NCBI RefSeq assembly: GCF_964204865.1
Contig: NC_135259.1
Coordinates: forward strand, 16,802,001 to 16,866,000
Source of the DNA: Styela clava
Lineage: Eukaryota
Length of the DNA: 64,000 nt
Reading direction: 5' to 3'
Shown in pieces: positions 75-63,580 of this stretch. The notes under the pieces are model-generated. The model ran no database searches, had not been told where the DNA came from, and worked only from the letters and a program-made list of their open reading frames with translations. Both the position numbers and the translations under genes were made by a program. Position 1 is the stretch's first letter. Each line of letters opens with the position of its first letter.

Positions 75-1423
75 CTTCTACGAGTATAAAATATGAGTTG
101 GAAATTATGAAAACTAAAGTGAGCCAACTTGACTCCAAAATATTGATTGGAGATAAAAAATTGGTGAGATTAAGTAAAAGCAACCAAATATATATTTTTT
201 TATCTATCATTTTTTATTATCAATTTTCACAAATTATATGATAATTATTTTTGTACATTAAACATTAAAAAACGAAATTTTTGTTGTTTATGTTGCATCT
301 AGTTATACAGTGACATGCAAGCACACAATAATTTAGTTTTATTGTAAATTTAGTTTGCTTTACAGAAAGCAAATCTGACTGAAGCGAGTTCGAATATTGA
401 CAAATTATTGTCCATTATCGGGTGGTTCAGAGCAAGCAATAATCTCATTTATAAACGTTTCACTGATTCTGTCAACTATACAACTGCAAAGGCTATATGT
501 GAAGGAATGGGGGCTCGCTTGGTTTCAACTGGAATTAGGAACAACCAAGTGAAAAAGTATGTCTGTTGATTGCAAAAAAATATGTAATTTGTAAAAAAGC
601 TAGATTTGTTTGTTTTGGGGAGTTATGTGTAGTATTAGGGCAAAAAAGTTTTTTCTCAAATACTGAAAAATTTATTTGGAGTTTATAATAGCTCAAATTG
701 TAACTACTTTCAGAAAGCTAGTATTTGACTTTGAAATTTGTTGCGTTGGAAACATCTTCTTGGCGTGTAGTTTCAGTTATTTATCATTATTTATAGGTTA
801 TTTTTTACAGCACAAATGAAATGTATTGTTAAGTGAAAACCAAACATGTACGTGGTACCTTGTACTTTGTTGATAATGACACAAAAACTATTCTTCACTA
901 TCACTTAACAAATGCTTTGAAATATTCAGCGTAAATAGAAAAAGTGTCAACTACAACCTCATTTTTTATTTTTTCACAATCTTTGTGGCACTTTGAGCTC
1001 GCTGTTTTAACACAAATTTTGCTAATTAATTGGTAAATTAATCTTTCATAAGAATAAAACGTACCACTAAATTTGTAACTTTATCTCTTGTACATGTGAA
1101 CTGTAATATAGGAATGAGGCTATAAATGAAGTTTTAACTCTCGGTAATTTATAATCCTGCATCTTCTCAGTGAAATATTTACGAAACATTACTTAACCGG
1201 AGCGTATGCATGGATAGGATTGGACGACATCAGCAATGAAGGAGTTTGGATTTGGTCGGATGGAGTAAATGATTCACCAAGCGCGATATGGGCACCGGGG
1301 GAACCAACAGGAGGTTTTAACGAAGACTGCGCAATCATGCTATTTTGGAATTCCAAACTTGTTGTTTATGATGGTGGCTGTACTGATTCCTATCGATTTG
1401 TTTGCGAAAAAGACTTTGCATGA
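75..1423 (+). CDS. G1: type II TM C-type lectin receptor, 3' part only (5' exons lie outside the window)
   Basis: Exons 75-163 (neck), 366-556 (CTLD-A: ...IIGWFRASNNLIYKRF...AICEGMGARLVS) and 1171-1423 (CTLD-B: AWIGLDD...WIWSDG...EPT...EDC...VYDGGC...FVCE*). GT-AG boundaries and phases are compatible. Confidence 0.85.
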
Positions 1424-2936
1424 TATTCCTAATATTTTATTTTTTTTAGTTCGAGTTTTTAGATAATCTAATAAATCAGTTCAAATAAGAAATAATAATC
1501 AAGAAATGTAAGCGCATTTCACTTTCTCATCGTTAAGTTGTTTCATGAAAATATATTGTTCGATTTTATTTCGAAAATATTGTTTCATATTGTAATCTAC
1601 CTTAATTTATGTTTATTAGCAAAAAAAATATTGTAGTATTTGTTATATTAATTTCATGTTTATTAAATGCTTTCAAGTTTATTATTTTCAATTCGAAGAC
1701 CCCGAAGTTTTATTCTTGCCATTTAACGCACGAAAACGCAGAAGAAAAATTGAAATTACATATTAAAAGTCCAAGAAAGATTTAAATTTGTATATGTATT
1801 TGTCCATCGGATTAATTGAAATTGTGCTCAATTAATTCAGAGACATTATAAAAAATTTATTTCTGAATTAGGTTAGATATTTTAATATATTTTCTCACTT
1901 TATGAATTTCATTGTTTCAAATTCAATCATGAAAATTGCGATTGCGCTACAAACGCGTTGCGCTACAAACTGGTTATTTTGTAATCTCTATTACATATTA
2001 TTATGTTTATTATGTGATAAACGCTATGGTGATATTTATTTGAAATGTAAATGATAACCAAATCGTGTCCATCTACACAATGTTTTTCACAACGTTCCTT
2101 GTATATTTACCTATAAAATTTTTTTATTTATGCAACAAAGTCGATCCAAATTCTGTGTGACATGTTTAAAGTTATGACTATTCTTCTGTAATAAACTTGT
2201 TAATATATTTAAAGTATACTTCCGTATTGGTGTTTTCTGCAAATTGATTTTGACACACTAAATTTTTATGGAATTTTTTAGGCTTAATATGTGGTTGTGA
2301 ATTGTGATGAAAATTATGTAAACTTGTTTCTGTTTTTATTTACGTTTATAATATTATCTACTTTCACATCTTATCAATTCATGTTCTGCTTTTTGTATTA
2401 AAAGAAATGTAAAAACAATTCAAGAAAAAATTTGATCAATAATATTCAAATTTTAATTAGTGTGATGAGTCTTTTGCGAACACTTTATTTTGGATCATCA
2501 AAACGTTGAAAAAATTTGTAGTCATTTCAATATTTGTGAAATCCATTCATATTTAAAATTTTACCTTATTCTGTTATGGCTAGTGCAAATGTGCAGCATG
2601 GGGGAGCAATGGGCATGTGAAATAAATTGAATGCGATTTGCGACGAAATGGCATTGTGTCAAGATGTACCGGGGTTTCAGCAAGTGCGACCTTCCCTGCT
2701 TGAAGATTAATCTGAACTGTTACTTATTCATGAATATTATTTTACAGGACATAAGTCATAATATATATATCATTCATAATACACACAGATAAGCGGCGCA
2801 CAAGCTTAGATGAAAGATAAGTAGTTGGTCCTACAGAAGCCAAATCATCAACGAAAGTACTAATTCATAAATTGTTAAATATTAATGTATGAAAATATGT
2901 AAATAAATCTGTACGATATTTTTACTACTAATTTAG

Positions 2937-3098
2937 TGAAATATTGTCGGTACGTTTCTTAATCGGAGAAAGTGCATGAATATGATTGGACGACATTAGC
3001 AATGAGAGAATTTAGGTATGGTCGGATGGAATGCATGATTTTCCAAGATATCATTGGGGATCAGCAGAACCGAACGGCAACAGAAGAGAAAACTGCGG
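2937..3098 (+). pseudogene. Orphan, decayed CTLD-B exon
   Basis: Starts ag|TGAAATA like CTLD-B. In-frame stops replace the W and G of WIGL, yet EPNGNRRENC is retained. Truncated at the 3' end. Confidence 0.8.
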
Positions 3099-8386: not shown

Positions 8387-10739
8387 ATGGAATATTATGT
8401 AAATTGTCAAAGTGAAAATGAATATGAAACCCCTCAAACTGCTTCAGGGCCGCCTGTGATTCCTAAACAAGGTTTGTGTTTTATTTGATTTGCAAAAAAT
8501 TTAATTTGTGAAATTTCAATAGAAAAAATAGATATAGTATGTAAACAAAAATGGGAATACATTATGTGCCCCGCTTTGCATTTCAGGAGAAATGGATGTG
8601 GTAACACTTCATTTCGGGTAAAAATATGAATTTTGTTTACATGAGTCGTTCAAGGTATGAATTTCCAAGCTCGTATTCTTTAGCGGCTGCAGACACGGTA
8701 ACATGGGTCAACTGCTTTGGCTTGCCTGCTAAAACCACATGTTCAACTTGAGCAAGATTTCCAACCAGTGCGACCATCCATTCACGCTCCGTAGCTTGCC
8801 CCGCCTCATCTACAAAATATTCCTATTTTTTGTAGTAATATTTGAGAAAAACCTTAAAAAAATATAATTAATTCATACATAAGTATGACAAGAGTAATAT
8901 TCTATGTGATCTCATATACGACAAGTCTATTATTGACGTTTCACATATATTTTTTTCATAGACAACAATAAAGCTACGAATACGAAAACTTTGTTTGTCC
9001 TGGGGATATTTCTGGGAATCTGCACGTTAGTGTCTGTTGCTGCATTTATTTTGATTATACAAGTTAGTATAGTTATCGTGTATTTTCGATATTTATCCAA
9101 TTTTGAATTTAAATTAACTTTATGTACTACTTTATTAAACCGATTATTTATATGATACGATTTGCTTTAAATTTTTTTCAAGCTTCAGGACGAAATGAAA
9201 CTTATGAGAGAAAAACTGGACACGTTAAAAACGACTCTCAAAAACGTAAGATATATCAATTTATAATCGAATTGTGTCATTTAAATTACCAACAAATTTT
9301 TATCATTTATTTTTTTCTGTTAAAACTTTGAATAAAAGGACAACGGAATTAAATTCCAATCTTGCAAAAATTTGAAATGGAATACAAAAAAGTAAATTAA
9401 AGTAAGCAACGCTTTCAAAAAAAGAAGTAAAAACGACGTCTAAAATCAAAATCTATCTATTCTAGATTGACAAATTTTCACATTTTATTTTACTTTCAGA
9501 ACAAATTGAAATAGTACAGAAGCTAGCAATAAAATTCAATTCTTCCTGTACAAAGATCTTAAACAAAAATTAGGTTGTTATTATCAATATTTCAAATAAT
9601 GAATGAATCCCTTGAGAAAGAATAAAAACAAGAAAGATACTTTTAAATAAAATCTACTATAAATTTCAATTAAAACGCGCCAATTCTGAATATAGAAAAT
9701 TTATTGTTGTATTCAATAAACATTTAACCGAGAATATCAGTCGGAGACCGAAGACTTATCGATCGGAGGTTAGGAGATCCCCCAAAACAGCGCTCTTACT
9801 CCATAGTGACACCGTGTGTCCCATCACTAATTAGTTAATAACTCGCTAATTATACGACATAATTCATCGAAAATTTAATTGTTTTCGTGAGATATCACAT
9901 GTATCTAACAAACAAACAAAGAAACAGACAAATACCTATCAACCTATATCTTAAGATCGATAAGTAATAACCTCATTAGAAATAGAAGTCGAAAAAATAT
10001 TGCTGCTGATATTGCTTTTATGGTTGGAAAATTTAGATCAAAATATTTTAAAATTCTATTCAAGATTTGAATCCTATTTTAAAATCCTAGTTTAACTTTA
10101 TTTCACAGAACACAAACCTGACTGATGCAAATTCTTGGATGAACGAAATGTTTTCCCTATCCGGATGGTTCAGAGCAAGCAATAATCTCATTTATAAACG
10201 TTTCACTGATTCTGTCAACTACGCAACTGCAAAGGCTCAATGTGAAGAAATGGGAGCTCGTTTAGTATCGACTGGAATAAGGGACAACAAAGTGAAAATG
10301 TATGTTAGTGGTGGGTTACATTACGAAATAACGTGAATTTGTAGTCATCGATTGTAGTTCGATGAAGCAGGTGGAAGATTCATATGAACTGTTATTTTTA
10401 AGGGAATTATGTCTTGATAATAATCGTTATTGTAGTTTTACTACAAAAAATCTGAAACTGACCGTAATTATTATTATTCCATTTAGTGAAATATTCCCGA
10501 AACATTACTTAGCCGGAGTTAGTGCATGGATAGGATTGGACGACATCAGAAATGAAGGAATTTGGGTTTGGTCGGATGGCGTAAATGAATCACCAAATTC
10601 TCTTTGGGATGCGCCAGAACCAAACGGCGGTAGAACCGAAAACTGCGTAGAAGTAGTATTCTATAATTCGACATTTGTTGGCAATGATGCTCCTTGCACT
10701 CTTTTCCGTCGTTTTGTTTGCGAAAGGGAGGTCAATTAA
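8387..10739 (+). CDS. G2: type II TM C-type lectin receptor, short neck, about 230 aa, EPN/GND
   Basis: Exons 8387-8471 (MEYYVNCQSENEYETPQ...), 8962-9062 (TM LFVLGIFLGICTLVSVAAFILII), 9183-9245, 10109-10299 and 10487-10739; total 693 nt, open frame. Confidence 0.8.
8637..8822 (-). pseudogene. MOV10/UPF1-like SF1 RNA helicase fragment, antisense in G2 intron 1
   Basis: Minus strand reads YFVDEAGQATEREWMVALVGNLAQVEHVVLAGKPKQLTHVTVSAAAKEYELGNSYLERLM*, matching the DEAGQ, LAGDPxQL and SxLERL motifs. Confidence 0.8.
9732..9967 (-). mobile_element. Non-autonomous Helentron-like (HINE/DINE-1-type) element in a G2 intron
   Basis: 11-bp sub-terminal inverted repeats ACTTATCGATC (9754-9764) and GATCGATAAGT (9955-9965), an adjacent hairpin TCGG-AGA-CCGA and an (ACAA)n microsatellite. 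Absent from the paralogous G12 intron. Confidence 0.6.
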
Positions 10740-15769: not shown

Positions 15770-17916
15770 TTATTCAAATTCCCTTTCGCAAACAAAACGA
15801 TTGACAGCTGAACAGGCTACATCATTACCAACAATCTTTGTATTATAGAATATTATTACGCAGTTTTCGGATGAACCCCCGTTAGGTTCCCCCGATGCCC
15901 ATATTGCACTTGGCGATCCATTAACATCATCCGACCAAACCCAAATTCCTTCGTGGCTGATGTCGTCCAATCCAATCCATGATCCTCTGGTTAAGTAATG
16001 TTTCGGAAATATTTCACTGGATGGAAAACAAAATATTACACATCGAGTTATTGTTTGTAGTGAAATTACCATATCAATTGATTGCGTTTAGAAATACCAG
16101 TTCTTGAGTATCTTCAACTGGCGATATCCAGAGAGGTTAATCTTGGAGTCAAAATTGATGACCAAAAAATTCCAGTAATTGTTTCAAATTATGTTAACGT
16201 CTCACATAATACGCTAACTTACTTTTTTACTTGGTTGTTCCTCATCCCAGTTGATACCAAACGAGCTCCCAATCTTTCACATTGAGCCTTTGCAGTAGCG
16301 TAGTTGACAGAATAAGTGAAACGTTTGTAAATGAGATTATTGCTTGCTCTGAACCATCCGGATATCGAAAACATTTTGTTCATCCTCGAATTTGCTTCAG
16401 TCAGGTTTGCGTTCTGTAAAGCAAACTGAGTTATAAATATAACTAAATTTGTTTTCATGTTACCGATGCAACTATAACTAGATGCAACATAAACAATAAT
16501 AGATTTTTTATGCGTATTGTACAAAAATAATATTCATATTTATATAAAAAATTATAGAAAGCAAATCTATTTGATCCCTGTTTCTTAAACTCACCAATTT
16601 GGTATCTCCAATCAATATTTTGGAGTCGAGTTGGCTCACTTCATTCTTCATATTTTTCAACTCATCTTTTATACTTGAAGATGCTGAAAATTTATCAAAA
16701 ACATAAAATTATGCAACTAATCACATTTTTTAGATCTAACGCAGTAATATTTTTACACAGAATCTTAACATAATATACTTTGATACTGAAGCGTTAGAGA
16801 AATCAGGTGACCAACTTACCTTATCAATTAAATTTTGTTTTTATATTTTATGTTTCGTTTTTACTCCGATAAACTAAGTTAAACTTGATAAAACAAAGAT
16901 TCGATGAAAAGTTGAAATAAAATATAAAATATGAACTTACTTTATTGTGGTTTCTAGGGAACTTTTATAAAGAAAGTATTGAAATGTGTTGCCGGTTTTT
17001 CAAATGATTCGACTCAGTTATAAGTTTAATAATATAAACTTAACATTTTGTGTTTCATTCGAAATCTTCGCAAGGGACGAATTGAACTGAGTTGTCAATT
17101 TTTCCAAAGTTTTCACTTGTTTTTAAATTTGAAAAAACTAAATCATGCTTATATATAATTGGCATTTTTTGACTAAAATCAATATATCATACTTTTTTGA
17201 GTGTCGTTTATTTTGATGGCGAGAGATGAATCAATCTCACTAAATTTGTCCAATTTTTCTTTCATTCCATTCATCTCGTTCTGGAGCTTATAATAAATTT
17301 TAACATTTCAGATGAACGAATTATTACAAAAATAGGAAAAAATATATTTTTGTACAATGCGCATATTTTTCTTTGATTTTATTATATAGAACACTAGAGT
17401 AAGTTTAATTTTCACTAAGTTTACTAATTAACTTCATTAAGTTTACTAATTAACCTGCATAAACAGGATAAATGCAGCAACCGACACTAGGACGCAGATT
17501 CCTAATGATATCGCTAGAACAATCAGAGTTTTCTTGTTTGTAGCTTTATTGTTGTCTGTGGAAAAAAAACGTCTATAAAAGGAATTTCAAAACAGAGATT
17601 TCCTAAGATAAAAAAAATATTTTCTGTTCTATTCTATGTCAAAATAAGGCAAACACAAATTGTTGCGACATTGATGTAAAATAGCTGATTTCATATGGAT
17701 AAAATAGGTTATTTTCATTTTTAAAAGCCTGAGAGGTTTCACCATGCCTGTTTACTCTTGTATTATATTTTTTAATTTTTCTTGTTATAGTACAAATTAG
17801 AATTTGAGTTTAATCAAACACAAACCTTGTTTAGGATCTGCAGGTGGCCTTGAAACAGTCGAGGAGATTTCATATACATTTTCACTTTGACCATTTACAT
17901 AACATCCCATCTCCAT
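15770..17916 (-). CDS. G3: type II TM C-type lectin receptor, about 270 aa, EPN/GND
   Basis: Exons 17916-17826 (MEMGCYVNGQSENVYEISS...), 17555-17455 (TM), 17286-17193, 16683-16595, 16413-16223 and 16016-15770; total 813 nt, open frame. Confidence 0.82.
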
Positions 17917-19508
17917 GTTACCACTTTATGAAATGATCTTCTTCTCAACTGAACGTAGTGTTGCTATCGATAGCCCTTTTATAGACTACAACATGGCAAT
18001 AAAATTAGTCAACTTTTACACGCAAACAATTAGGCAAATCGTGTGGAAATAATGAAATAATAATGACATAGAACATATATGTATATACAGTTTATGGCCG
18101 TGCATATTTCAAACTAACTGAAAACTTTATTTGTTTTAATATTAATGATTCTGTAAATCAATATTATCAATGCATTAAAGGTGGGAGACGAAACCTCTAT
18201 TTTGCGGTAAGCCATAAGAATTAGTTACAGAATATTTGACACATTACTTCCTTGATACTCAAGCTAATACATGTTTTTGAATGGCCAATGCTTGTATTAA
18301 GTATATCATGATATAAATAAGATTTTTTAATTCACATTTCACATTTTAATATATTTACATTGAGACGTATGCGGATTGACTAAGTGACGTACATGATATG
18401 AAAATCTCAATTGATTCACTATACATCAATCATATTTCAAACATACTAATTAGGTCACAGCGAGGAAATATTTTGAATTTCACTCTCCTGCTAGTAAAAT
18501 TATTGAATGGTTCTGAATTGAAGATTATTAAAATTAAAATGCACATAGCATATGTTATCTTACGTGCCATTTGATGGTTATATCATAAAGATCATAGTTC
18601 AATAGTGATATGTTTAAAATATGATTTAAAGTATGATTTAGCTTCAACACAAGCAATATTTTTTGAGCTCTCGATAGATTGTTTAACCTCGATACACAAC
18701 GGTTGGTTTTTCACTTTTTCTAACTTGCCGACAAGATTGTTTTCGCCTAAATAGCAATAGATCTGGGGATTAATTCAATATGTTCAACAATCCAAACCTA
18801 ATAAAACGAACAATTTCAAAATGTTTGACGCAGTATACCACGCATGGAGAATGAAATGAAAAATATTCAATATTTGATTGCTCTGACCCTACTAATCTAA
18901 TCTATGTGATTGAACTGATTGTGATGTGATTGACGTGTATTGTAGCATGTGAGGTTTGTGAAAAAGGAAAGAGGTCCGTCACATTGTCATTCTGAAGATG
19001 TCTATATCTAATTATGTTGTATAAAATGATAATCATGAAATATAATAGGAAAATATATGCAGTTAAATATGTAAATGTAAACAGTTATTCATTCATATTT
19101 GCAGTCACAATATACATAAGGCATTGGGTATTTTAAACGAGTATTGATTTAAATATCGAGGAAGTAATGCGTCACATATACTGTAACTGGTTGTGTTCTT
19201 TCATGGCCAACCATTGATGGTGTATTAGTTATCTGGAATTTACATACTCCGAAAATATACCTTATTAAGGTATAATTTATAACAGATATTGAAATTTGTC
19301 ATTTGCACTGTCATATAACCAAGGGTATATATTGCTTTGTGTCATTACGGTTTTGCCACCTACTGATGATAATAATGATAACAATTTTATTTGACTTGAA
19401 ATGTTAGCTGATTAATTAATTTTAGCTGCTAATGCTCTTTAAAAGGGTTATCGGCACCAAGACTTCGCATTTGAAAAGCAGAACATTTTAAAGCGCGTTA
19501 CTATTGAG

Positions 19509-19593
19509 ATGGAATGTTATGCAAATTTTCAGAGTCAAAATATATATGAAACCGCTCAGACTGCTTCAGAGTCACAAACGATTCCTAAACAAG
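19509..19593 (+). pseudogene. Exon-1-only relic of a lectin gene (head-to-head partner of G3)
   Basis: MECYANFQSQNIYETAQTASESQTIPKQ with intact donor and the start of intron 1. Sequence then jumps to 3'-flank-type DNA at about 19760. Confidence 0.8.
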
Positions 19594-20205
19594 GTTTGTG
19601 TTTTATTTTATTTACTCAACATTTAAATTGTTAAACTACAATAGAAAAACTAGATATAATATGTAAACACGAATCGTAACACAGTATGTTCCATGCTTTG
19701 CATTTAAGGGGAAATCAATGTTGTAACCCTTTCCTAATCATTATTATTATTAATTTTATAATAAATATATTCTGAGTTTGATCTGTAACACTGTAATTTT
19801 TTATTGAAATTTCACTATTAGATTACAATGCGATTTTAAAGTTATCAATGCTCCTAAACCAACCTATTTCAAACATTCTGATCAAATTTTCTTAAACTCA
19901 AAAGAGTTGTCTCGCTTTTTGATGAGTTTTGTGTTTTCTCTTTATATTTAGTATTTCATTTCAGTACTTTTTAAATTTCAGATTAAAATTTAGAAGACTT
20001 CACAGTGAATAAATAAATTTTATTGATATCGTCATGCTTCTAGCTTAAAAGAGAATCCAGAATACTCATCTAAAAGATTTTTATAAATTTTTTGGCATAG
20101 TGAATAGTCCTTTTTTGAACATTTTTCCGTTTTTGGTGTGGTTAAATATATATAAATATTGGATGACACTTTAATTTTACAATATTTCTATACTGAGTTA
20201 ATAAT

Positions 20206-20260
20206 GAGGGGTTTCATATACCTTTTGACTTTGAACATTCGCTCAGCATTCCATCTCCAT
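20206..20260 (-). pseudogene. Truncated exon-1 relic (head-to-head partner of G4)
   Basis: Reverse complement is ATGGAGATGGAATGCTGAGCGAAT...GTATATGAAACCCC, with a stop at the first Tyr codon. Confidence 0.7.
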
Positions 20261-41428: not shown

Positions 41429-41505
41429 TACATAATTCAACCATCAGACATACCATCATACCATCAGACAACCAACCAGACATACATAATTCCTTGAATT
41501 ATGTA

Positions 41506-41545: not shown

Positions 41546-44114
41546 GAAATATATTTGTGTTAGTGTGCAGCAAGACTCTTGAATCACTTAGGATTTTTAT
41601 TCAATACGCATATTTTTTATTTGATTTTATTATATAGTACATTAGGCTCAATTTAATTCGCAGTACTAACTTACATAATCAGGATAAATGCAGCAACAAA
41701 CAATAAACAGGAAATTCCAAAAGAAATCGCGACAACGAACAAGTTTTTCTTGTTTGTAGCTTTATTGGTCATCTGTAAAAAGAAAAAGTCAATGAAAAGC
41801 ATTTCGAAAGCGATTCCATGCTGTAAAAGAATTACTCATTTTTTTTATTCCTTGAAAAAAAGAACGATTAAAATTTGATATGGCATTGCTGTAAAATGGA
41901 TGATTTCATGTGGAAAATGTGATATTTGAATTTTTAGCTGCTGGAGAAGTTTCACCATGCCTGTTTACCATTGTATCCTATTTTTCATTTTCTCTCGTTA
42001 TATTACAAATTAGAATTTAGGTTAATCAAATAAACTACAAACCTTGTTTAGGAACCGCAGGTGACCCTGAAGCAGTCTGGAGTGTTTCGCACGCATTTTC
42101 ACCTTGACCATTCACATAACATTCCATCTTCAAATCAACGCTATATGGTGTGATCTGCTTTCAACTAAACAAAGTCGTGATTCCCATTACCATTTTATAG
42201 AGGATTACAACATCTCATTAGAATTAGATAGCTGTACACGCAAACATTGACGTAACTCAAAAAATATATTTGGTAATATTATCAGTGGGAGTCCGAAACC
42301 ATAATAATGACATTAAACAATATATACTCTTAGTTATATGGTCGTACATATGTCAAGCTAACTGAAGACTTAAATTGTTTTAAATTATAGCTTAAGGTGC
42401 AATGATGATTCTGTAGTTCCATATTATCATTGCGTCAAAGGTGGGAGACGAAACAACTATTTTGCGATAAGCCATAAGAACTAGTTACCGAATATGTTAC
42501 ACATTCTTACTAGAGCTAGGAAATGTTTTCAAACGGCCACTGCTTGCCTTAAGAATATCATGAAATAAATAAGAATAGATCAAATGTTTATATCATATTC
42601 CACATTATAATATATTTACATTTAGACGTGTGCGGATTGACTAAGTGAGGTACTTGATATGAAACCCTTAATTTGCTTCAATATACGTCCATCATATTTC
42701 AATAATATTGTTAGGTCACAGCAGGGAAATAAATATTTTGAATTTCATTCTCCTGCTAGTAAAATCATTAATTCATTCTGAGCTTTACTGAGTTATTCAA
42801 GCTTACTAACATTATTAAAAGCATCTTCTGCTAGATTGATTTTCAGTCCTACACGACCTCAACTGTCAGTTCGAAACGATAATTGGTTGTCAATGCTTGG
42901 TAAATCAATTTCCGATATTTTCCGGCTAAGCGGCGAAGAATTTCATTTTTTTCATTTGTTATCATTATGTCTTTTTTGTCAATGAAATAAAATTCATCAA
43001 AGCCGAAATGCAATGTACATAAAATGCTCTTATCATATGTTATCTTACACAACCTAATTAATGATTATGTCATAAAGACCATATTGTGATAATAATATAC
43101 TTACAATATAAGTATGATTTTGCCACAAGCACAATTTTTTGGGCTCAAAAATTCGATAGATTGTATTTGTTATAGTTTATTAACAACATGTATTACAGAC
43201 TACAGGCAGTTTACAGGCTCACTGATATATTTTATATATCTGGAGTGTCGGAGTAATAAACAACTCTCTCTCACGGAGTCATAAAATGGAAAGCATCAAT
43301 CAAAATTTGTTCAACCTCGGGACACGTCCGGTAGTTTTTAACATTTTCAACTTGCCGACGGGATTGTATTGGTCTAAATAGCAATAGATATTAAGGTTAT
43401 TTCAATAGGATCGATTATCCTAATCAACCGAGAAATACAAAATGTAACACATGATACCACGCACGGAGAATGAAATAATAAATATTCAATAATTGCATGC
43501 TGTAACCCAAACCTGACCGGTGTTTTTGAACTGTAATTGACGTGTATTGAAGCAATTGAGATTTGCATAACAAGCACGTCACATTGCCAACCCATATGCA
43601 GTTCTAAATAATATATGTAATATATGTCTAAATGTATAAAATAATCATAAAAATAGAATGGAAAAAATGTATGCTAAATCGATATTCATTCATATTTGTA
43701 ATCACAATATACATAGGACATTGGCTAGTTTAAAATACGTATTCATTCAAATATCAAAGAAGTAATGCGTCACATATACTGCCACTGGTTCTGTTTTTTC
43801 CTGGCCCACATTTGATGTTGTGTTATTTATCTAAAATTTACATAATTGAGAATACACCTCAAGGTATGATTCAAAACAAATAATGTAATTTGACGTATGT
43901 ACTGTTACATAACCGAGGGTATGTTGTTTTGTGTCATCAGGGTTTTGCCACCCTCTGATAATAATAGCATCGGAATTACGTTGATATGTATTTCATTTGA
44001 CGTGAAATGTTAGCTGATTAATTAAGGTTAGCTGCTAATTCTCTATAAAACGGCTATCGGCACCAAGACTTCGCATTTTAAAAGCAGAACATTTTAGAAC
44101 ACGTTACTATAAAG

Positions 44115-46516
44115 ATGGAATGCTATGAAAATTTTCATAGACAAAAAATAGATGAAGCCCCCCAGTCTGCTTCTGGGCCACCTGCGATACCTAAACAAGG
44201 TTTGTGTTTTATTTGACTCACCCAAGATTTATTTTTCAAATTACATAGTAAAACTAGATAGAATATGTAAACACATAAAATATAACTATTTTTGAGCAAT
44301 GCTGTAAAAAAATTGAATTGATTCATTCGGGTCAAGTATGACACGAGTATTATTCTATATTGTGTTTTCTCTTACGAAATTCCACGTTTGAAATCTTACA
44401 TATATTCGTTTTTTTATAGAGAACAATGAAGGCACAAAAAAGAAAACTTTGATTGTTTCTGCAATATCTTTGGGAATCTCCTTCTTAGTGTCTGTTGCTG
44501 CATTTATCCTGATTATGCAAGTTAGTATAGACATCGTGTATTTTCGATGTTTATTTGTCACTGAAATTAAATTAAGCTCACTACAGCGCGATAAATTAAT
44601 AAAAACTTATAGTATTGAAGAAGCTATTTGTTCTCCACTTTTGAATCTCCATTTATTTGCATTTCTAAATTTATTTTAAGCTTCAAAACGAGATAAAATA
44701 TACGAAGGAAAGATTAGAGAAAATGAGTGAGACTGATTCATCTCTGGCCAACAATATCAACGACACTCAAAAACGTAAGATTTTCAAAAAATTTTCAAAG
44801 CGCCAAGTAAATCATCGATGTTGGAGTTTTATTTAAAAACTTAGGAACGAGTCGAAGCTCTTGAAAAGCTGGAAATGGATGTCAAGTCGTCCCTTGTGAA
44901 GATTTCAAATGAAAGACAACAAAATGAGTCGATATAAATATTATAAATATTATGATTTATTATAATATGAATATAATTAAAATTTAATTAAATATGAATT
45001 TTTAAAATTGCGCATCATTTATTCGCCTCAAGTGCTTGAACACAGTAAAGCGAAAAATATAATCAAATGAGCAAATGAATTAAGCATGGTAATTTGTTTC
45101 AAGAATTTCGCAAACGCTCGCAGCAACAGACGCAAAAGAATACAATATGGTATGTTGAAAAATTTCGTAGAATATCCTATTTCATGAAGTCAGATCGAGA
45201 AATTCTATGCTTTTGCTATTTTTTAGATATTTGAATTAAAATTTCAGGTTCTTTGAAAACAAAAAGTGAGTTGGAAACTTCAATTAAAACAGAAGTGAGT
45301 GAGCTGAACTCCAAAATACACAACGGAGATAATAAATTGGTGAGTTTGTGACTCATAACATGACGTGTTTTATTAGGAAAATAAAATGACTTATAATCAC
45401 GTGGCAACATTAATTCAACTCAATTTATATGTGCTACGTTTTATGAATATCTACTTTTATTACTGAGGAGTTATAAAATTTATTGTTGTACTCAAGAACG
45501 GCTTAAATAACCACATTCCAAATAGAACTTAATTAAACAAAATGCTTGCTTATAATTTTTTTACATTTTATAGTTGGAAAATTTAGTTCATAATATCCCA
45601 GTATTATTTATGCGTAATTTCATTTTATAGAATAAAAGCCTATCTGATACAAATTCGAGAATTACTGAAATGTTTTCGATATCCGGATGGTTCAGAGCGA
45701 GCAATAATCTCATTTACAAACGCTTCACTGATTCTGTCAACTACGCGACTGCAAAGGCTCACTGTGAAGGAATGGGAGCTCGTTTGGTATCGACCGGAAT
45801 TAGGAACAGCCAAAATAAAAGGTCGGTAGGTGGTTTGTGTGAGAAACTTGAGCATATTTCGTTGGGATTTTCCAAAACCTTGCTTTTTATGAAAAATAGT
45901 GTGGATTTAAGTTATCTGTGAATACATTATAAAATGTTACACCACCAATGACATATATGTTTTTAAAAAAGGAAAGCACGCAGATTTACTGGACCTACAA
46001 TGCTTTTTCCAGTAAGGAAAATATATATTTTATACTCCTTTCTAGTGTTCCAAATCAAAGTTTGCTAATTTGAATGTACATTAGTTTTCCGAAGATATAT
46101 TTTGACAAGCTGAAGAGACACGTGCATTGAAATAAGTTGAAATTAATATTCCACATGCATACATTGTGCATTTGCATTTGTACGGTGCTCCTTTCTTCCA
46201 GTAAACTGGTATTTTCAATGGGCATCGAATTATAATAAAAAAACGTCTGTAAATATTAATTTGTTTTCCATTCAGTGAAATATTTCCGAATCAGTATTTA
46301 ACTGGGGCGTATGCATGGATAGGATTGGACGACATCAGCAGTGAAGGAACTTGGGTTTGGTCAGATGGAGCAAATGGTTCACCAAGTGCAATATGGGAAT
46401 CGTTAGAACCAAACGGCGGCAGAAAAGAAAACTGCGCAGTAATCAGATTATCTGGTGTTATTGATGTTGCGTGCTCTGAAATCCATCGACTTGTTTGCGA
46501 AAAGGAATTTGCATGA
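44115..46516 (+). CDS. G9: type II TM C-type lectin receptor, about 267 aa, EPN/VID, single cytoplasmic Tyr
   Basis: Exons 44115-44199 (MECYENFHRQKIDEAPQ...), 44420-44520, 44681-44774, 45248-45339, 45631-45821 and 46276-46516; total 804 nt, open frame. Confidence 0.8.
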
Positions 46517-48946: not shown

Positions 48947-50470
48947 TCATTCAAGTTCCCTTTTGCAAACGAATCGGTGGACATTTAAACAACGGGCATC
49001 ATTAGCAACAATTATTGAATTATTGGTTACTCCTGCGCAGTTTTCAGTTCTACCGCCGTTTGGTTGCCCCGGTGCCCATATTACACTTGGCGTTTCATTT
49101 ACGCCATCCGACCAAACCCAAATTCCTTCATTGCTGATGTCTTCCAATCCAATCCATGAAGAAGCTCCGGTTAGGTAATGTTTCGGAAATATTTCACTGA
49201 AAAGAAAATAATATATTACGAATTAATAGAGTTTTTTGTGTTGAAATTACCATACCGTTTATTTTTTATAAGTAAGTTTTTCTTTTAGACCAACTATAAA
49301 TACCAGTTGATAGGAATATTTAATTTCAGAGAGAGAGGTTGATCATCGAGCCAAAATCGATGACCAAATAATTTGCGTAGTTGTTTCGTATTATCTTAAC
49401 GTCTCACATAATCCGATAACTTACTTTTTCACTTTGCTGCACCTCATCCCAGTCGATATCAAACGAGCTCCCATTCCTTCACATTGAGCATTTGCAGTTG
49501 CATAGTTAACAGAATCAGGGAAACGTTTGTAAAAGAGATTATTGCTTGCTCTGAACATTCGGATATCGAAAACATTTTGGGTAATTCTCGAATTTATATC
49601 AGATAGGCTTTTATTCTTAAAAATGAAATTACACATGAATAATACTTGGAGTTTATGACCTAAATTTTTCAACTATAGAATAAAAGCAATTATAAACAAC
49701 AAATTGTTCTAAGTTCTCTTTAGAATGTGGTTATTCGAATGTTTTTTTGAGTACAAAAATAAAAACCAGTGATCTTGAGTAATAAACGTAGATATTAATA
49801 AAACGTAACACATTTAAAACGAGTACAATTCATGTCGCCCCGTGATAATAAATCATTTTATTTTTATAACAAAACATGCCATATTATGAGTCAATAATAA
49901 ACTCACCAATTTGGTATCCTTGTTGTGTATTTTGGAGTTCAGTTCACTCACTTCTTTTATGATTAAAGTTTTTAATTTTCTTTTTGTTTTCAAAGAAGCT
50001 GAAATTTTAATTCAAAAAGTTGTGCAACCAATAGCAAAAACATAGATATCTGATCTGATCTCATGCAAAAAGATTTTGTGCAAAGATTTTTTAGCATAAC
50101 ATACTATATTATTTTGCGTCTGTTGCTACGAGCGCCTGTGAAATTATTGAAATAATATACCCGTTGAATTCATTTGTTCATTTAATTATATTTTCTGCTT
50201 CACTTTTGGAAAATGTGTTCAATCGGTTGAACGTGATAAATGATGCAAAGTTGAAAATATGTATAACACCAACTCACTTTGTTGTGTTCCACTTGAAATC
50301 TTTGTGAGGGACGTCTCGACATCCGTTTTCACCTTTTCAAATGTTTCGACTCGTTCTTAAGTTTTTGAATAGAAGTTTAACTCTACAATTGATACGTTTC
50401 AAATTAAATTTAAAAGATCTTACGTTTTTAAGTATCGTTGATAATGTTGACAAGAGATGAATCAGTCTCA
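48947..50470 (-). pseudogene. G10: 5'-truncated lectin gene (no tail or TM exons), QPN/AND
   Basis: CTLD-B 49196-48947, CTLD-A 49615-49425 and neck exon 49998-49907 are open. Exon 3 is cut at about 50470 and joined to 3'-flank-type DNA. Confidence 0.75.
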
Positions 50471-51334
50471 ATCAGTATTGCTCTATATTTACGCAACTCT
50501 GTATGTGAGCGTTCATGCACCACAAGATATGTGTTTTATTTGACTATAGTATACCCGGGTATACGGGTAGTATAGCGGGTATACCAGCTAGATCTGGTAT
50601 ATTGGACTAATCCAATAATATTGATTATATTTACAAATGATTTATATATTATATTGCTTTTCTAGGCTACACTTTTGCTATATTATAGATGAACAATGTA
50701 TCTGAGATATATATACAATCGTTAATTTTGATAAAAAAAAACGCAGTTATTAGCGTTCTTGAGCAGAACATAATCAATCGTTATAACTAAGTAATTTTAG
50801 AGCTATAATTAGTATGTATTTGTGTTTTTTTCTTCAAATTTTTTCTGAAGGCTTCTTTACTTCAGAGACTATTGCGTAAAATTTTAGTATGTGTAAAGTT
50901 AGCTCAAGTCAAATATGATTAGAATAAAAAAAATGAAATTATGTTCGAAACTAAAATATTTGCGGGGGTAAATAGTACACATTTGCGAATGTATGTGAAA
51001 ATTAAAATGTCCTAGATTGCAAATACCCATGGGTGCAAATGCCTATTAGATAAAATTAATGCTAGAATCTACGACTGGATTCAAAAGTGTGCAGGTTGAA
51101 TATTCTTGATGCCTGTCTTATTTTGGATTTATTTAATAACCCGACAACAATATGATATAGTAAACAATAAAACATTTCATTTTTCTTCGTAAACTGAGGA
51201 CAACGAAAAGTCTGTTAAAAAGCACGGTGGGGTTTGTATTAGCCACCTTCAAAAAATGCTTGTCGAATAGTTCAAGTAATTCATTAGTAAACACTCATTA
51301 TTCAACTATTTCCTATTATTGTTCATTCTATTCA

Positions 51335-53565: not shown

Positions 53566-55462
53566 TTATTCAAATTCCCTTTTGCAAAGAAAAGGATTGA
53601 AATTTGAACAAGGTGCATCATATCACCAACAATCTTCAAGTTATAGAATAATACTACGCATTTTTCGAATCTGTGCAATTTGGATCCATATTGCATCTGT
53701 CGATCCATGAACACCGATCAAACCCAAATTCCTTTGTGGCTTATGTTGTCCAAACCAATCCATGAAAAAGCTTCGGTCAAGTAAGGTTTCGGAAATATTT
53801 CGCTGGGTGAAAAAGAAAATATTACACATCGTGTTATTTTTTGCAGTGAAATTACCATATCAATTATTATTTATGGGTTAGTTTCCTATTGCGTTTAGAA
53901 ATACTAGTTTATAAGAACCGTCAACTGGCGATATCCAGAGAGGTTGATCATGGAGTCAAAATCGATTATCAAAAAATTCCCGTAATTGTTTCATATTATG
54001 TTAACTTCTCACATAATTCGTTTACTTTTTTACCTTGTTGTTACTCATTCTAGTTGATACCAAACGAGCTCCCGATCCTCCACATTGAGCTTTTGCAGTA
54101 GCGTGATTGACATGACAAAATCAGTGAAACGTTTGTAAATGAGATTATTGCTCGCTCTGAACCATCCGGCTATCGAAAACATTTTGTTCATACTCCAATT
54201 TTCGCGTGTTTTCATGTTGGCTCACTTTATTCCTCATACTTGAAGAAGCTGAAAGTTTATTCAAAAACATTAAACTAGGCAACTAATCACATTTTCGTAT
54301 CTAGAGACTTTTAATATAACTAACTTTGATTCTAAGTCGTCAAAGAAGTCAGGTGACCAGCCTACTTTATCAATTATATCGTTTTTAGATTTTATGTATG
54401 GTTTTTATTTTGATAAACTATGTCTAACCTGATAAAGCAAAGCTGATAAAACAAATACTCGATGCAAAGTTCAAATATCTAAAATATGCACATACTCTTT
54501 TATGTTTTCTTGCAAATTTTTGGGAGGAAGGAATTGAATTGCGTAGCTATTTTTTTTTTAATTTCTCGACTATCTATAAGTTTTAAATCAAATGTTAAAC
54601 TTCATTGACCTACCATGGAAATTTTAAATAACATACGTTTTTGAGTGTCGTTTCCCAGCTTTTGAAGTGCGATGCTTAGTTATTAACATATTATTAATAT
54701 AAATTACACGTTTGTGTTTCATTCGAAATCTTTGCGAAGGACAAATTGAACTGTGTTGTCTATTTTTCAAAAGTTCCCACTTGTTCTCAAATTAAGAAAA
54801 AAATAATTTATGCTGATACAATTCTGAATTCAATATATCTTACGTTTTTGAGTGTTGTTATATTGTATCAATATTTCACATAAACGGATTAGAACAAATT
54901 TAGAAAACAAAAAACTTTTTGTACAATATGCATAATTTCATTTAATTTTGCTATATAGAACATTAGACTTAGTTTAATTTCCTGTACTAACTAACTTGCA
55001 TAATCAGGATAAATGCAGCAATGGACAATAAGAAGCAGATTCCGAAAGATATCACCACAACAAACAATGTTTTCTTGTTCGTAGCTTTATTGATGTTTGT
55101 TAAAAGAAAACGTGGATAAAAGGCATTTCAAAAAAGAAATTTCATGATGTAAAAAAAATGATTCATATTTATTGTTCGTAAAAATAGGGGAATTAAATTT
55201 TGTTACGGCATTGGTGTAAAATAGATAATTTCATATGGAATATATGATATTCGCATTTTTGAAAGCCGGAGACGTTTCACCATGCCTGTTTACCCTTGTA
55301 TCCCATTTTTTAATTTCTATTGTTTTAGTATAAATTAGATTTTAAATTATTTAATCAAATAAAACACAAACCTTGTTTAGGAACCGCAGGTGGACCTGAA
55401 GCATTCTGAGGGATTTCATATGCATTTTCACTTTGACCATTTACATTACATTCCATCTCCAT
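53566..55462 (-). pseudogene. G11: lectin pseudogene
   Basis: Exon 1 55462-55372 (MEMECNVNGQSENAYEIPQ...). TM-exon acceptor lost; deletions in neck exons; frameshifting insertion in CTLD-A; stop (WV*) and deletions in CTLD-B 53802-53566. Confidence 0.82.
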
Positions 55463-56731: not shown

Positions 56732-58708
56732 ATGGAGATGGAATATTATGTAAATTGTCAAAGTGAAAATGAATATGAAACCCCTCAAACTGCTTCAGGG
56801 CCACCTGTGGTTTCTAAACAAGGTTTGTGTTTTATTTGATTTCCAAAAAATTTAATTTGTTAATTTACATTAGAAAAACTAGATATAGTATGTAAACACA
56901 AATGGGAACAGAGCATGTGCCCTGCTTCGCATATAAATCAATGAGATAACACTTTTATTCGGGTAAAAGCATCTGTTCTATTTAAGCACTATTTCCAGAC
57001 AGTGCGACCGTGCATTCAGGCTCCGTAGCTTGTCCCGACACATCCACTCGAATATTCATATTTTTTGTTCTTGTAATATTTGAGCAAAACTCTGAAAAAG
57101 TAGAATTTTGTCATACACGCCAATTATGACACGAGTAATATTCCATATAATCAATATACAAAATGTCTATTATTGACATTTTATATATTTATTTTTTCAT
57201 AGACAGCAATAAAGCTAAGAATAAGAAAACTTTGTTCGTTCTCGCGATATCTCTAGGAATCTGCTTATTAGGGTCTGTTGCTGCATTCATCCTGATAATA
57301 CAAGTTAGTATAATTATCGTGTATTTTTGATATTTATTCGATTATGGAATCAAATTATCTTCATGTACTACTTTATAAAACCAATTATTTATATGATACT
57401 ATTTGCTGATTGTTTTCCACTTTTGTCTTTCTCTATTTATCTGCAATGTTTAAATTTATTTTAAGCTTCAAAACGAGATGAATCTTATGAGGGAAAAACT
57501 GGACACATTAAAAGCGACACTCAAAAACGTAAGATAGACGTTTTTAATCAAATCATGTCATTTAATTACCGAAAGAAAAATTTTATTTTTTTTGTTAAAA
57601 TAATTGAATTAAAGGTTAGGAACTAAATTCCTATCTCGCGAAAATTAATGAAACACACACAAAAAAAGGTTTAAGTAAGCACTTTCAATAAATTGTATAA
57701 ACGACATCTAAAATCAAAATCTATCAATTCTAAATTACCACTTTCATATTTTATTTTAGTTTCAGAACAAATCAAAATAGTAGAAAAGCTAGCAACAAAA
57801 TTCAACTCATCCTGTACAAAGATTTTGAACAAAAATTAACTTTTTATTGTTAATGGCTCAAACTAAGATAATTCAAACAATGAGCCAATCCTGAATAAAG
57901 AAAATTTGGCATTGTAATCAATAAACGTTTTCCTAACAACATTAGAAATAAGAGTTGAAAAAATATTGCTGTCTATATTGCTTTTATCTTTTAAAAGTTT
58001 TTAAAAGTCAATCTTACATTTATTTTACAGAACACAGTTCTGAATAATACAAGTTCTAGGATGAACAAAATGTTTTCGATATCCGGATGGTTCAGAGCAA
58101 GTAATAACCTTATTTACAAACGTTTCACTGATTTTGTCAACTACGAAACTGCAAAGGATCAATGTGACGGAATGGGAGCTCGTTTGGTATCGACTGGAAT
58201 AAGGAACAACACACTTAAAAAGTATGTTAGTGGTGGCTTATATTACGAAACAACGTGAACTTTTAGTCATCGATTTTAGCTCGATGAATAAGTTGAGGAT
58301 TCATAGGCACTGTTTTTTCTAAACGGATCGTGATTTGAAAAAAACTAATCCATACATAATAATCGTTATGGTAATTTTACTTTAAAAATATCTCAAACTG
58401 TATAGTAATTTTCTTGCAGAAACCCTGAACTATTCATAATTATTTATATTGCTTTTAGTGAAATATTTCCGAAACATTACTTAACTGGAGTTAGTGCATG
58501 GATAGGATTGGACGACATCATCACTGAAGGAATTTGGGTTTGGTCGGATGGCGTAAATGAATCACCAAACTCTCTTTGGAATGCGGCAGAACCAAACGGC
58601 GGTAGAACTGAAAACTGCGTAGAAGTATTCAATAATTCGACTATTGTTGGCAATGATGCTCCGTGTACTCTTTTTCGTCGTTTTGTTTGCGAAAGGGAAT
58701 TTGATTAG
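56732..58708 (+). CDS. G12: type II TM C-type lectin receptor, short neck, about 231 aa, EPN/GND
   Basis: Exons 56732-56822 (MEMEYYVNCQSENEYETPQ...), 57203-57303, 57466-57528, 58031-58221 and 58459-58708; total 696 nt, open frame. Closest paralog of G2. Confidence 0.8.
56990..57055 (-). pseudogene. Internally deleted MOV10-like fragment in G12 intron 1
   Basis: Reverse complement GTGGATGTGTCGGGACAAGCTACGGAGCCTGAATGCACGGTCGCACTG = VDVSGQATEPECTVAL. Confidence 0.7.
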
Positions 58709-61393: not shown

Positions 61394-63580
61394 TCATGCA
61401 AATTCCATCTCGCAAACAAATCGGTTGTTGTAGGAACATAACAGATCAGCAACGCCAATTTTTGAATTGAAAAATAGTATGGCTGCACAGTTTTTGCTTC
61501 TACCACCGTTGGGTTCTCCCGTTCCCCACATTGTGCTTGTCGAATCATTTGTTCCATCCGACCAAACCCAAATTTCTTCATTGCTGATATCGTCTAATCT
61601 TATCCATGCATAAGCTCCGGTTAGGAAATGTCCCGGAAATATTTCACTAAAAAGATGCAATATCATTAATTACTTACAATTAGAGCTTCATAGCTTCATA
61701 GTTTCGTTTGGTAAGTTTTATCATCGTGAAAGTTTAATTGCGGCTTGTCTCAAAATAGGCGTTCCATCATCTTGCAAAAACTAATCAGCGCTACCATCGC
61801 TACAAAAAAAGATTGTGAACAAATTTAAAATGATTTAGTGAGTACTTTTTAGTAGTTACATTTTGAGCTATTAATAATTTTTGAACTAATTCTTTAGTAT
61901 TCAAAGAAAACTATTTTTGTTTTGACACTACAATTATGGGTCTACAAAACAAACATTAAAAATAAATATTCTTCACGGAACTAACTAACTTACTTTTTGA
62001 CTTGGATGTTCCTAATTCTAGTCGATACTGAACGAGCTCCCATTCCTTCACATCGAGCCTTTGCAGTTGCTCAGTTGGCAGAATCAGTGAAACGTTTGTA
62101 AAAGAGATTATTGCTGGCTCCGAACCATCCGATAATGGAAAATAATTTGTCAATTTTCGAGTTTGCCTCAGTCAGGTTTTCTGTCTGTAAAGCAAACTAA
62201 GTTTGAAATTAACCTTAAATATTATGTGTTTTCATGTTACTGTATAACTAGATGCAACATGAACAACATTTTTTTTCACGATCATATATATACCTTTAGA
62301 ATTCGTGGTAAATTATAGATATGTAAATATATTTGATCCCTGTTGCTTAAACTCACCAATTTGTTGTTTTCGATGAATATTTTGGAGTCGAGTTGACTCA
62401 CTTCATTCTTCAATATTTTCAACTCATGTTTTATACTCGACGATGCTAAAAATTTATTTGAAAGCGTAAAATTTGGTGACTAATCATATTCTAGAAACCA
62501 ATCAGTAAGTTTTTTTACAGCGACTTTGAATATAAATTTCTTTGAGTCTAAAGCGCCAATCGTCAGAGGGGTCAAGTGACTAACTTTTCTCATCATTTAT
62601 ATGTGTTTTTAAATTTTAAGTTTTGTTTTTGCTTTGGTGAATCTCAAAAGAAATTCAAACTAACTCGCGTTTTTGAATTTTGTTTCTAAGATTTTTAAAT
62701 GCAATGCATAGGTATTAGCATATTAGTATTATAAACTTGCTTTTCTGTGAATCATTTGAAATCTTCGCGAGGGACGAACTGAACAGTATTGACAATTTTT
62801 CAAAAATTTCAACTTGTTCTAAAATTTAAAAATAGTATTTATGTTCATGTACAACTGGCACGATCCGACTGTGATCAATGTATCTTACGTTTTTGAGTGT
62901 CGTTTATAATGATGGACAGAGATGAATCAATCTCACCCATTTTTTCCACTTTTTCCCTCATATGATTCATCTCGTTCTGGAGCCCAAAATAAATTTGAAT
63001 ATTGAAGAAAAATTACAATGGTAGTTTTTGTATATAAATTTAATTATATCATTTAGTTCATTAAACTTCAATTAATTCACAGTTACAGAAAGATAAAACA
63101 CGGAATATCTGAACTAACTTGCATAATCAGAATAAATGCAGCAACAGACACTAAAAAGCAGATTCCCGAAGATACCGCGAAAGCGAACCAAGTTTTCTTG
63201 ATATCATGCTCATTGTACTCTATAAACTAGAATTATGTGGATAACGTATGTAATGAAAATTTCAAAAAAATAATTGGAAGGAATCAGAAAACATTGAATC
63301 CCGTCTCATTTGTTTTAAGTAATTTCACCTCGTTTTTCCATGACATTACTAAAATTTGTTGTTCACTATTGAAAGAAAGATGATAGTAAACTTTCCTCAT
63401 AAAAAAGTGTTCGTATTTGCGTTTCCTCGTTTTATCGTTTACTTGGTATTTCAATATTACAAATTACACTGGAAGTTATCAAATAAAACACTAACCTTGT
63501 TCAGAAATTGGATGTGGTCTCGAAGCAGCCTGAGCGGTTTCATATGCATTTTGCCTGTGATCATTTTCATAATATTCCAT
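61394..63580 (-). pseudogene. G13: complete lectin gene structure with a nonsense codon in CTLD-A
   Basis: Exons 63580-63496 (MEYYENDHRQNAYETAQ...), 63219-63119, 62982-62889, about 62817-62741 (GC donor), 62445-62357, 62184-61994 and 61646-61394. TGA replaces TAC at 62073-62071. Confidence 0.75.

Follow-up and report, generated by a model that had tools for sequence, protein, structure and literature searches.

The 64-kb window analyzed here (the whole stretch of 64,000 nucleotides, C13:16,802,001-16,866,000 of the 377-Mb Styela clava assembly) is AT-rich (~30% G+C), without runs of N, and carries part of a tandem and inverted array of genes that probably encode oligomeric type II membrane C-type lectins, a family specific to S. 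clava whose predicted role would be multivalent Ca2+-dependent glycan binding at the cell surface. Separate exons encode a tail, a transmembrane (TM) helix, a neck, and a C-terminal C-type lectin-like domain (CTLD). The genes are real and largely intact. As had been remarked in a preliminary description of this DNA, they are missed by the open reading frame list, which gives just CTLD and TM-helix fragments on both strands.

Loci were found by tblastn with the window's own exon peptides in the window and the surrounding 296 kb, after which the hits were chained. Paralogs were also aligned as nucleotides, and frame continuity over the exon junctions was tested by codon phase. Chaining of exon hits gave 17 loci, the same 13 paralogs and 4 relics in 64 kb as had been counted from the sequence alone. 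The multi-exon paralogs are g1, g3, g4, g5, g7, o31, g8, o41, g9, g10, g11, g12, and g13; the single-exon relics are two C-terminal CTLD exons (g2 and g6), the tail exon at 19503-19593, and a broken tail exon at 20204-20260 on the reverse strand. Eight of the 13 paralogs keep open spliced frames and five (o31, o41, g10, g11, and g13) are broken. The earlier estimate that about half of the copies are dead is roughly right, the four relics being fragments throughout. One of them, the "orphan" tail exon at 19503-19593, is taken as the first exon of g5 in the RefSeq model P0171.

The genes share one plan of 5-7 exons, in which single exons for the tail and the TM helix are followed by 1-3 exons for the neck and two for the CTLD. 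The exon types are as follows:

E1, 85-91 nt: conserved TATAAAA box upstream, ATG, and ~30 tail codons; phase-1 GT donor
E2, 101 nt: Lys-rich flank and TM helix
E3, 94 nt: neck
E4, 78 nt: neck cassette, phase 1 in and phase 1 out
E5, 71-77 nt: degenerate copy of E4 with the wrong phase or stops
E6, 74-92 nt: neck
E7, 191 nt: N-terminal half of the CTLD; phase-2 donor
E8, 241-253 nt: C-terminal half of the CTLD, ending at the stop codon; one base after the acceptor AG completes the split codon

The exon boundaries are all AG/GT and their phases are compatible. Phase-verified spliced frames of 230-294 codons are open in g3, g4, g5, g7, g8, g9, and g12, as well as in g1 for its 3' part. The intact models comprise five exons (g3 and g12), six (g4, g5, and g9), or seven (g7 and g8), which bears out the tail/TM/neck/short-form four-Cys CTLD layout over 5-7 exons suggested in the preliminary description. 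Neck length varies by cassette exons: a short E3, 0-3 E4 copies, and 0-3 E6 hits per locus. The short 63-nt E3 in g3 and g12 arose by loss of 31 nt, through which its outgoing phase became 0 instead of 1. The loci of the window, with positions counted from its first nucleotide and with the ligand-site class described below, are:

g1, 75..1423, forward: 3' part of an intact gene (E6 75-163, E7 366-556, E8 1171-1423), frame open to the stop codon, 5' exons ~2.1 kb upstream of the window; class EPT...YD
g2, 2932..3096, forward: relic of the CTLD exon E8 with 3 stops
g3, 8387..10739, forward: intact 5-exon short-neck gene of 230 codons (8387-8471, 8962-9062, 9183-9245, 10109-10299, 10487-10739), open across all junctions, Pfam Lectin_C match with E 2e-9; class EPN...ND
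g4, 15770..17916, reverse: intact 6-exon gene of 270 codons (E1 17826-17916, E2 17455-17555, E3 17193-17286, E6 16595-16683, E7 16223-16413, E8 15770-16016), E4 made unusable by a 1-nt shift of its donor; class EPN...ND
Solitary tail exon E1, 19503..19593, forward: GT donor intact
E1 relic, 20204..20260, reverse: broken, with an in-frame stop
g5, 21214..23570, forward: intact 6-exon gene of 268 codons (21214-21304, 21573-21673, 21806-21899, 22509-22597, 22797-22987, 23330-23570), E4 dead through loss of the acceptor and a 19-nt deletion; class QPN...LD
g6, 25022..25132, forward: short E8 relic
g7, 27348..29912, forward: open 7-exon frame of 290 codons (27348-27432, 27658-27761, 27903-27996, 28069-28140, 28696-28769, 28964-29154, 29660-29912), with a Glu within the TM helix; class EPT...YD
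o31, 31007..32078, reverse: dead relic of the 5' exons E1-E4, interrupted by stops and frameshifts, no CTLD exons
g8, 34844..37686, forward: intact 7-exon gene of 294 codons (34844-34934, 35264-35364, 35502-35595, 35677-35754, 36221-36309, 36756-36946, 37446-37686), E5 at 35906-35982 in the wrong phase and skipped; class QPN...LD
o41, 41069..42133, reverse: dead relic of the 5' exons E1-E3, its TM exon frameshifted
g9, 44115..46516, forward: intact 6-exon gene of 267 codons (44115-44199, 44420-44520, 44681-44774, 45248-45339, 45631-45821, 46276-46516), with Asp in place of the second tail Tyr; class EPN...ID
g10, 48947..50516, reverse: 5'-truncated gene, E3 with a stop, then E4, E6, E7, and E8, own E1 and E2 lost; class QPN...ND
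g11, 53566..55462, reverse: dead, E2 acceptor lost, stops in E4 and E7, frameshifts in E7 and E8
g12, 56732..58708, forward: intact 5-exon short-neck gene of 231 codons (56732-56822, 57203-57303, 57466-57528, 58031-58221, 58459-58708); class EPN...ND
g13, 61394..63583, reverse: dead, stop in E7, E3 acceptor lost; class EPN...AD

Proteins identical or near-identical to the window exons are S. clava RefSeq models, and most of the window paralogs have already been modelled automatically there under CD209-, CLEC4M-, FCER2-, and hepatic-lectin-like names. Our splice models agree with the exon sets of P0180 (294 aa, identical to g8), P0177 (270 aa, g4), P0156 (297 aa, g1 together with its upstream exons), and P0182 (the upstream twin of g3). 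RefSeq represents g9 by P0061 and P0152, g7 by P0057 (210 aa, with E1-E2-E7-E8 splicing only), and g12 by P0009, which comprises only E7-E8; P0163 has an alternative 5' exon for g3. The g4 isoform X2 (P0158) skips the TM exon and reads E1 (17826-17916) in another frame; if real, it would yield a protein with neither an anchor nor a signal sequence. P0160 joins g10 to E1 of g11 and to a coding exon at 52149-52277 that lies in a repeat element. For one locus five isoforms are listed, and in the NCBI pipeline several isoforms would imply transcript support.

The only Pfam domain of the predicted protein is Lectin_C (E 4e-14); a match to Lectin_N was sub-threshold. The CTLD contains exactly four Cys, which is the short form. 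Its best sequence match in PDB is the lectin TC14 of Polyandrocarpa (E 9.3e-15), with the same four Cys aligned, followed by Endo180, langerin, DEC-205, DC-SIGNR, and CD23; NKG2D ranks below TC14 and the group II/VI CTLDs. Outside S. clava, the CTLD has its nearest relatives among generic domains of the EPN type, which come from many phyla: a crinoid, amphioxus, a snail, a cichlid, a haptophyte, and even a bacterium are represented. Look-alikes retrieved with a language model are chordate asialoglycoprotein-receptor (ASGPR) clusters, with scores of 0.91-0.92.

The N-terminus is acidic and has no hydrophobic signal sequence. The TM helix lies at approximately residues 40-66, is uncharged, and follows an N-K-K flank. 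C-terminal to it are found the four CTLD Cys and nearly every N-x-S/T sequon. As far as can be judged from the sequence, this arrangement indicates an N-in, type II single-pass membrane protein. Neither a collagen Gly-X-Y stalk nor a signal peptide was found in the aligned full-length models, and identity with collectins such as mannose-binding lectin (MBL) was rejected on these grounds.

Each neck exon has an a/d heptad pattern that is matched by no more than 0.7% of shuffled sequences, and the register breaks between exons. The AlphaFold2 model of P0180, built from a 13-row family alignment, places a helix at residues 86-166 with a predicted local distance difference test value (pLDDT) of ~75-83, the model as a whole being of low confidence. 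Modelling of three copies of P0180 residues 64-170 gave a parallel in-register bundle with a score of 0.55 versus 0.01 for the best of 3 controls; the runs agree in at least 92% of contacts, with partner pLDDT of at least 82. Among 30 proteins solved as one-chain pairs 21 attained that mark, and among 23 solved as single chains none did, but this calibration used two copies, so the counts apply to three copies only roughly. The pass of the neck model may also reflect likeness to solved coiled coils. Taking these models together, the neck most likely self-associates, as a parallel trimer.

The proposed protein would thus begin with a ~30-aa acidic cytoplasmic tail containing two well-kept Tyr, continue through a Lys-rich stop-transfer flank and one TM helix, and extend outside the cell as an alpha-helical neck of 1-3 heptad-repeat cassette exons (up to 5 elsewhere in the cluster) that most likely forms a parallel trimer. 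The C-terminal four-Cys CTLD carries a putative Ca2+-site-2 type motif, and the neck would display three carbohydrate-recognition domains (CRDs) on the cell surface, enabling multivalent Ca2+-dependent binding of glycans. Subfamilies of differing specificity and reach could be produced by whole-gene duplication and loss, by gain and loss of exon cassettes, and by substitutions beside the EPN...ND site. The tail Tyr would most plausibly serve for internalization or SH2 docking. An immune role is plausible.

The family extends beyond the window and spans C13:16,647,167-16,871,941 (225 kb) with 57 loci on both strands, of which the window covers about a quarter. About 32 of these loci are multi-exon and ~20 of the latter have no visible defect, while the rest of the cluster is broken or fragmentary, in the manner of a tandem birth-and-death cluster. 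The tail and TM exons, E1 and E2, had no match elsewhere in the 377-Mb genome, and searches of protein databases with tail/TM/neck and full-length sequences, the latter with RefSeq proteins as queries, returned S. clava proteins only. The earlier proposal that type II membrane CTLD proteins are encoded here by a cluster restricted to one lineage and evolving by birth and death is supported. At least 145 CTLD exons in the genome match the E8 peptide, the close ones all at C13:16.62-16.87 Mb. C-type lectin domains show massive expansion within the genome of S. clava, and other E8-like CTLD clusters are located, for example, at C16:6.43-6.50 Mb, C16:10.21-10.24 Mb, C8:14.74-14.78 Mb, and C1:4.86-4.90 Mb. 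A diverged E7-E8 pair with an EPN-D-V motif (L001, C13:16,618,436-16,619,378) lies 28 kb outside the cluster with no tail or TM exon nearby; it could represent the ancestral type, or else a soluble relative.

Part of the cluster is present twice. Positions 1-25240 of the window, containing g1-g5, are copied ~95 kb upstream at C13:16,695,914-16,730,206 (loci L009-L013) with 96.4-98.4% identity. The twins differ in which genes are broken: in the upstream copy, E8 of g1 contains an insertion and E1 of g5 a stop. Inverted copies of one gene occur at 16.684-16.696 and 16.788-16.792 Mb. The ~95-kb-distant copy may be a segmental duplication or a retained haplotype, and in the latter case our copy counts are inflated.

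Pairwise Nei-Gojobori estimates of the ratio of nonsynonymous to synonymous substitution rates (dN/dS), made by exon and sub-region, were 0.36 for the TM exon, 0.35-0.45 for the neck exons, 0.23 for the CTLD part of E7, and 0.14-0.33 for the E8 scaffold. Values of 0.14-0.45 over the TM helix, neck, and CTLD scaffold imply purifying selection and show that the genes are not junk. The loops beside the ligand site, after E-N-C and after the third Cys, gave 0.76-0.89 and are relaxed or mixed in constraint. The ratio nowhere exceeded 1 among the TM, neck, and CTLD exons and their sub-regions, so diversifying selection is not shown. The four Cys, the WIGL motif, and hydrophobic-core residues are invariant across the family alignment. 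E7 and the E8 scaffold are strongly conserved, and variation is concentrated on either side of E-P-N...E-N-C, where it includes a 4-residue indel.

Well-supported groups in the E8 tree coincide with seven ligand-site classes, namely EPN/ND, QPN/LD-FD, EPT/YD, EPN/VD-ID, EPN/HD, EPN-EPK/AD, and QPD/HD, five of which occur in the window. All intact copies keep EPN, QPN, EPT, or QPD together with E-N/D-C, and most copies have E/Q-P-N plus E-N-C. The N-D pair occurs in one clade only (g3, g4, g10, and g12), and the Trp of the "WND" motif in none. The short neck is confined to one subclade of the E8 tree, while triple-E4 and triple-E6 necks arose separately. The ligand site, neck length, and tail had been said to vary independently; all three do vary, the ligand site in seven classes that follow the clades, but ligand site and neck are only partly independent, with the short neck in a single subclade.

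The tail contains two well-kept Tyr, as had been noticed; to regard them as signalling motifs is an interpretation and not an observation. Y6 and E16 occur in each of 13 full-length RefSeq models and Y15 in 12 of them, and N8, N13, and Y15 are among the best-kept columns of all 28 tail exons of the cluster. The Tyr contexts are Y-x-N and N-x-Y-E-T/I. The former matches the preference of the Grb2 SH2 domain, and about half of the tails fit Y-x-x-hydrophobic. The position of a Tyr six residues from the N-terminus resembles that of the endocytic Tyr in the ASGPR H1 subunit. The tail consensus contains no immunoreceptor tyrosine-based activation motif (ITAM), inhibitory motif (ITIM), or hemITAM, and neither (I/V/L/S)xYxx(L/V/I) nor YxxL/I; no Lys or Arg was found in the TM helix of the aligned cluster members.

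Architecture, PDB ranking, and the language-model look-alikes point to the vertebrate group II receptors (ASGPR, DC-SIGN, CD23, and langerin) as a closer analogue than group V. Features common to group II and, by prediction, to the Styela proteins are type II topology, an oligomerizing heptad neck, and a CRD at the C-terminus whose putative Ca2+ site is of the EPN/QP type; in both, neck length varies with repeat number and tandem expansion is lineage-specific, and the RefSeq names agree with this likeness. DC-SIGN-like genes, for example, have undergone a tandem lineage-specific expansion in Fugu (PMC514892). The differences are considerable. The Styela CTLD is of the short form, has four Cys, and lacks the additional disulfide hairpin at the N-terminus of the long form, and it has x-N-D or x-x-D in place of "WND". 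The Styela neck repeats are separate cassette exons and the tail is unrelated. There is no orthology: vertebrate CTLDs match only at E 1e-7 to 1e-11, and the tail, TM helix, and neck were found in S. clava proteins only.

TC14 of Polyandrocarpa misakiensis (PDB 1BYF and 1TLG), from the same family Styelidae, is the best match of the CTLD, with four aligned Cys, but it is a 125-aa chain without tail, TM helix, or neck, and its motif is EPS...DD instead of the EPN, QPN, EPT, or QPD of the Styela cluster. A small soluble TC14-type lectin consisting of a CTLD only, with an EPS motif, is ruled out by the tail, TM helix, neck, and other motifs. BsCD94-1 of Botryllus and CiCD94-1 of Ciona are single type II CTLD receptors on tunicate blood cells, the latter described as having no carbohydrate-binding capability (PMC5465252). 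They were compared by description only; they resemble the cluster in type II topology and one CTLD and differ in being single genes. No tunicate CD94-like receptor was among the homologs found in protein searches with cluster members.

CTLD receptors of group V are devoid of Ca2+/sugar residues, and they signal via an ITIM, a hemITAM, or a charged TM residue. The group V receptors (Ly49, NKR-P1, CD94/NKG2, and CLEC7A) resemble the Styela proteins in being type II CTLD proteins with tail Tyr encoded in a tandem birth-and-death cluster with pseudogenes. However, the Styela cluster keeps the Ca2+-type motif and has none of the group V signalling features, and clustering is the only one of the defining features that is shared. 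The analogy to the natural killer (NK) complex and dectin cluster drawn in the preliminary description fails on defining features: the Ca2+/sugar residues are kept and ITIM, ITAM, hemITAM, and basic TM residues are absent.

Several observations weigh against the reading as surface receptors that bind glycans. The full canonical set of E-P-N, E, and N-D occurs in one clade only, and the other classes have H, V/I, L/F, A, or Y instead of the Asn of "WND"; many copies may therefore bind sugar differently or not at all. The CTLD of P0180 was modelled poorly by AlphaFold2 (pLDDT 25-60, whole-model mean 50.8). Several RefSeq models in the window are chimeric or without a TM helix (P0158, P0163, P0160, and P0009). 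Tail Tyr have been lost in some apparently intact genes (one in g9, both in locus 34, and also in locus 57). The dN/dS of the tail exon is 0.75-1.2, near neutrality, which makes the tail less convincing as a conserved signalling module. Even in the five best-kept tail columns dN and dS are both low, with a ratio of ~1.15; since the low dS equals the low dN, protein-level constraint on the Tyr motifs is not demonstrated.

These observations bear differently on the other explanations. The cluster could be a largely decaying array, a recent neutral burst of segmental duplication with few or no working receptors and with some models being annotation artefacts. The five broken paralogs and four relics of the window, the interspersed transposon fragments, the chimeric or TM-less RefSeq models, and a tail dN/dS of ~1 would be expected in that case. 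Against this, 8 copies in the window and ~20 in the cluster are open through 5-7 exons with intact splice sites, the constraint on the TM helix, neck, and CTLD scaffold (0.14-0.45) is that of selected genes, and the four Cys, WIGL, and core residues do not vary, which together make wholesale decay improbable. The proteins could also be membrane lectins with a non-immune function, either in development, metamorphosis, tissue remodelling, or adhesion, as ascribed to TC14, or in glycoprotein clearance like hepatic lectins. TC14 is the closest solved relative, the look-alikes and the sub-threshold Lectin_N match suggest endocytic receptors of the ASGPR type, Y6 resembles in its position the endocytic Tyr of ASGPR H1, and the 25 MBL genes that are high at metamorphosis (PMC7540406) may include such CTLD genes. 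We nevertheless regard a non-immune function as rather unlikely, although it is the alternative to be taken most seriously: ~20 intact diversified copies with rapid turnover are not obviously needed in a developmental role, and Y-x-x-hydrophobic fits just about half of the tails.

An NK-complex-like system for self/non-self recognition or allorecognition would consist of polymorphic type II CTLD receptors that recognize protein ligands and signal through the tail Tyr. The birth-and-death cluster of type II CTLD genes with many pseudogenes and two mostly conserved tail Tyr fits such a system, as does the expression of BsCD94-1 and CiCD94-1 on tunicate blood cells (PMC5465252); the difference in broken genes between the window and its ~95-kb-distant copy (96.4-98.4% identity) would amount to presence/absence polymorphism if the copy is haplotypic. 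The retained EPN/QPN-type Ca2+/sugar motifs, which are missing in group V, speak against it, together with the lack of ITIM, ITAM, hemITAM, and a basic TM residue, tail dN/dS of ~1 and loops below 1, and the ranking of TC14 and group II/VI CTLDs above NKG2D, and we consider it very doubtful. A related and bolder idea, to which we give little credence, is a polymorphic recognition system in which the ~95-kb copy is the other haplotype with a different set of working and broken receptors, and Y-x-N plus N-x-Y-E in the tail form a tunicate-specific phosphotyrosine docking site. If true, it would be an independent functional counterpart of the Ly49/KIR-type variable receptor complexes, built from a sugar-binding lectin. 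An S. clava-specific array of oligomeric membrane lectins remains the reading that we favor.

Tunicates are the closest living relatives of vertebrates and rely on innate recognition. As far as the sequences allow, the cluster shows how a tunicate could have built the DC-SIGN/CD23/ASGPR body plan on a short CRD of the local TC14 type and amplified it to ~57 loci, in which the neck is modular and the ligand site falls into seven classes. It clearly exemplifies a convergent expansion of membrane lectins within one lineage. It offers a natural series for the effects of changes in the "WND" Asn and adjacent loops on glycan specificity and of neck length on reach. The finding is not surprising in kind, as CTLD expansions by lineage are common and several others are present in the S. 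clava genome. Reviews of tunicates mention only single CD94-like type II CTLD receptors (PMC5465252), and a literature search found no paper on a tail/TM/neck CTLD family of S. clava. The S. clava genome paper reported 25 "MBL" genes that are expanded and highly expressed at metamorphosis (PMC7540406). These may include loci of the cluster, even though a collagen stalk is missing from its proteins; RefSeq names the cluster genes inconsistently, and they could have entered the count under the "MBL" label.

Several mobile or repetitive elements are interspersed with the genes. A reverse transcriptase fragment of a non-LTR retrotransposon is located between g2 and g3, at 6050-7340 on the forward strand (Pfam RVT_1, E 3e-13). 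The expected place of the 5' exons of g10 is occupied by a repeat element at 51762-52799 on the reverse strand, with two open reading frames and a GIY-YIG-like stretch; it is possibly Penelope-like, and its reading frames had no Pfam match at E 0.01. An Rfam scan of the window found nothing at the gathering score. A hairpin-forming element at 41399-41533 on the reverse strand, inside the o41 relic, gave only sub-threshold Rfam matches resembling miRNA precursors (43 bits, where the gathering score is 89), and none of the hammerhead families matched it at E up to 1. In g8, the intron before E7 contains a 251-nt palindromic insertion at 36487-36737 similar to miniature inverted-repeat transposable elements, with arms of 61 nt that are 89% complementary, and a related copy lies immediately upstream of the TM exon, at ~35036-35193.

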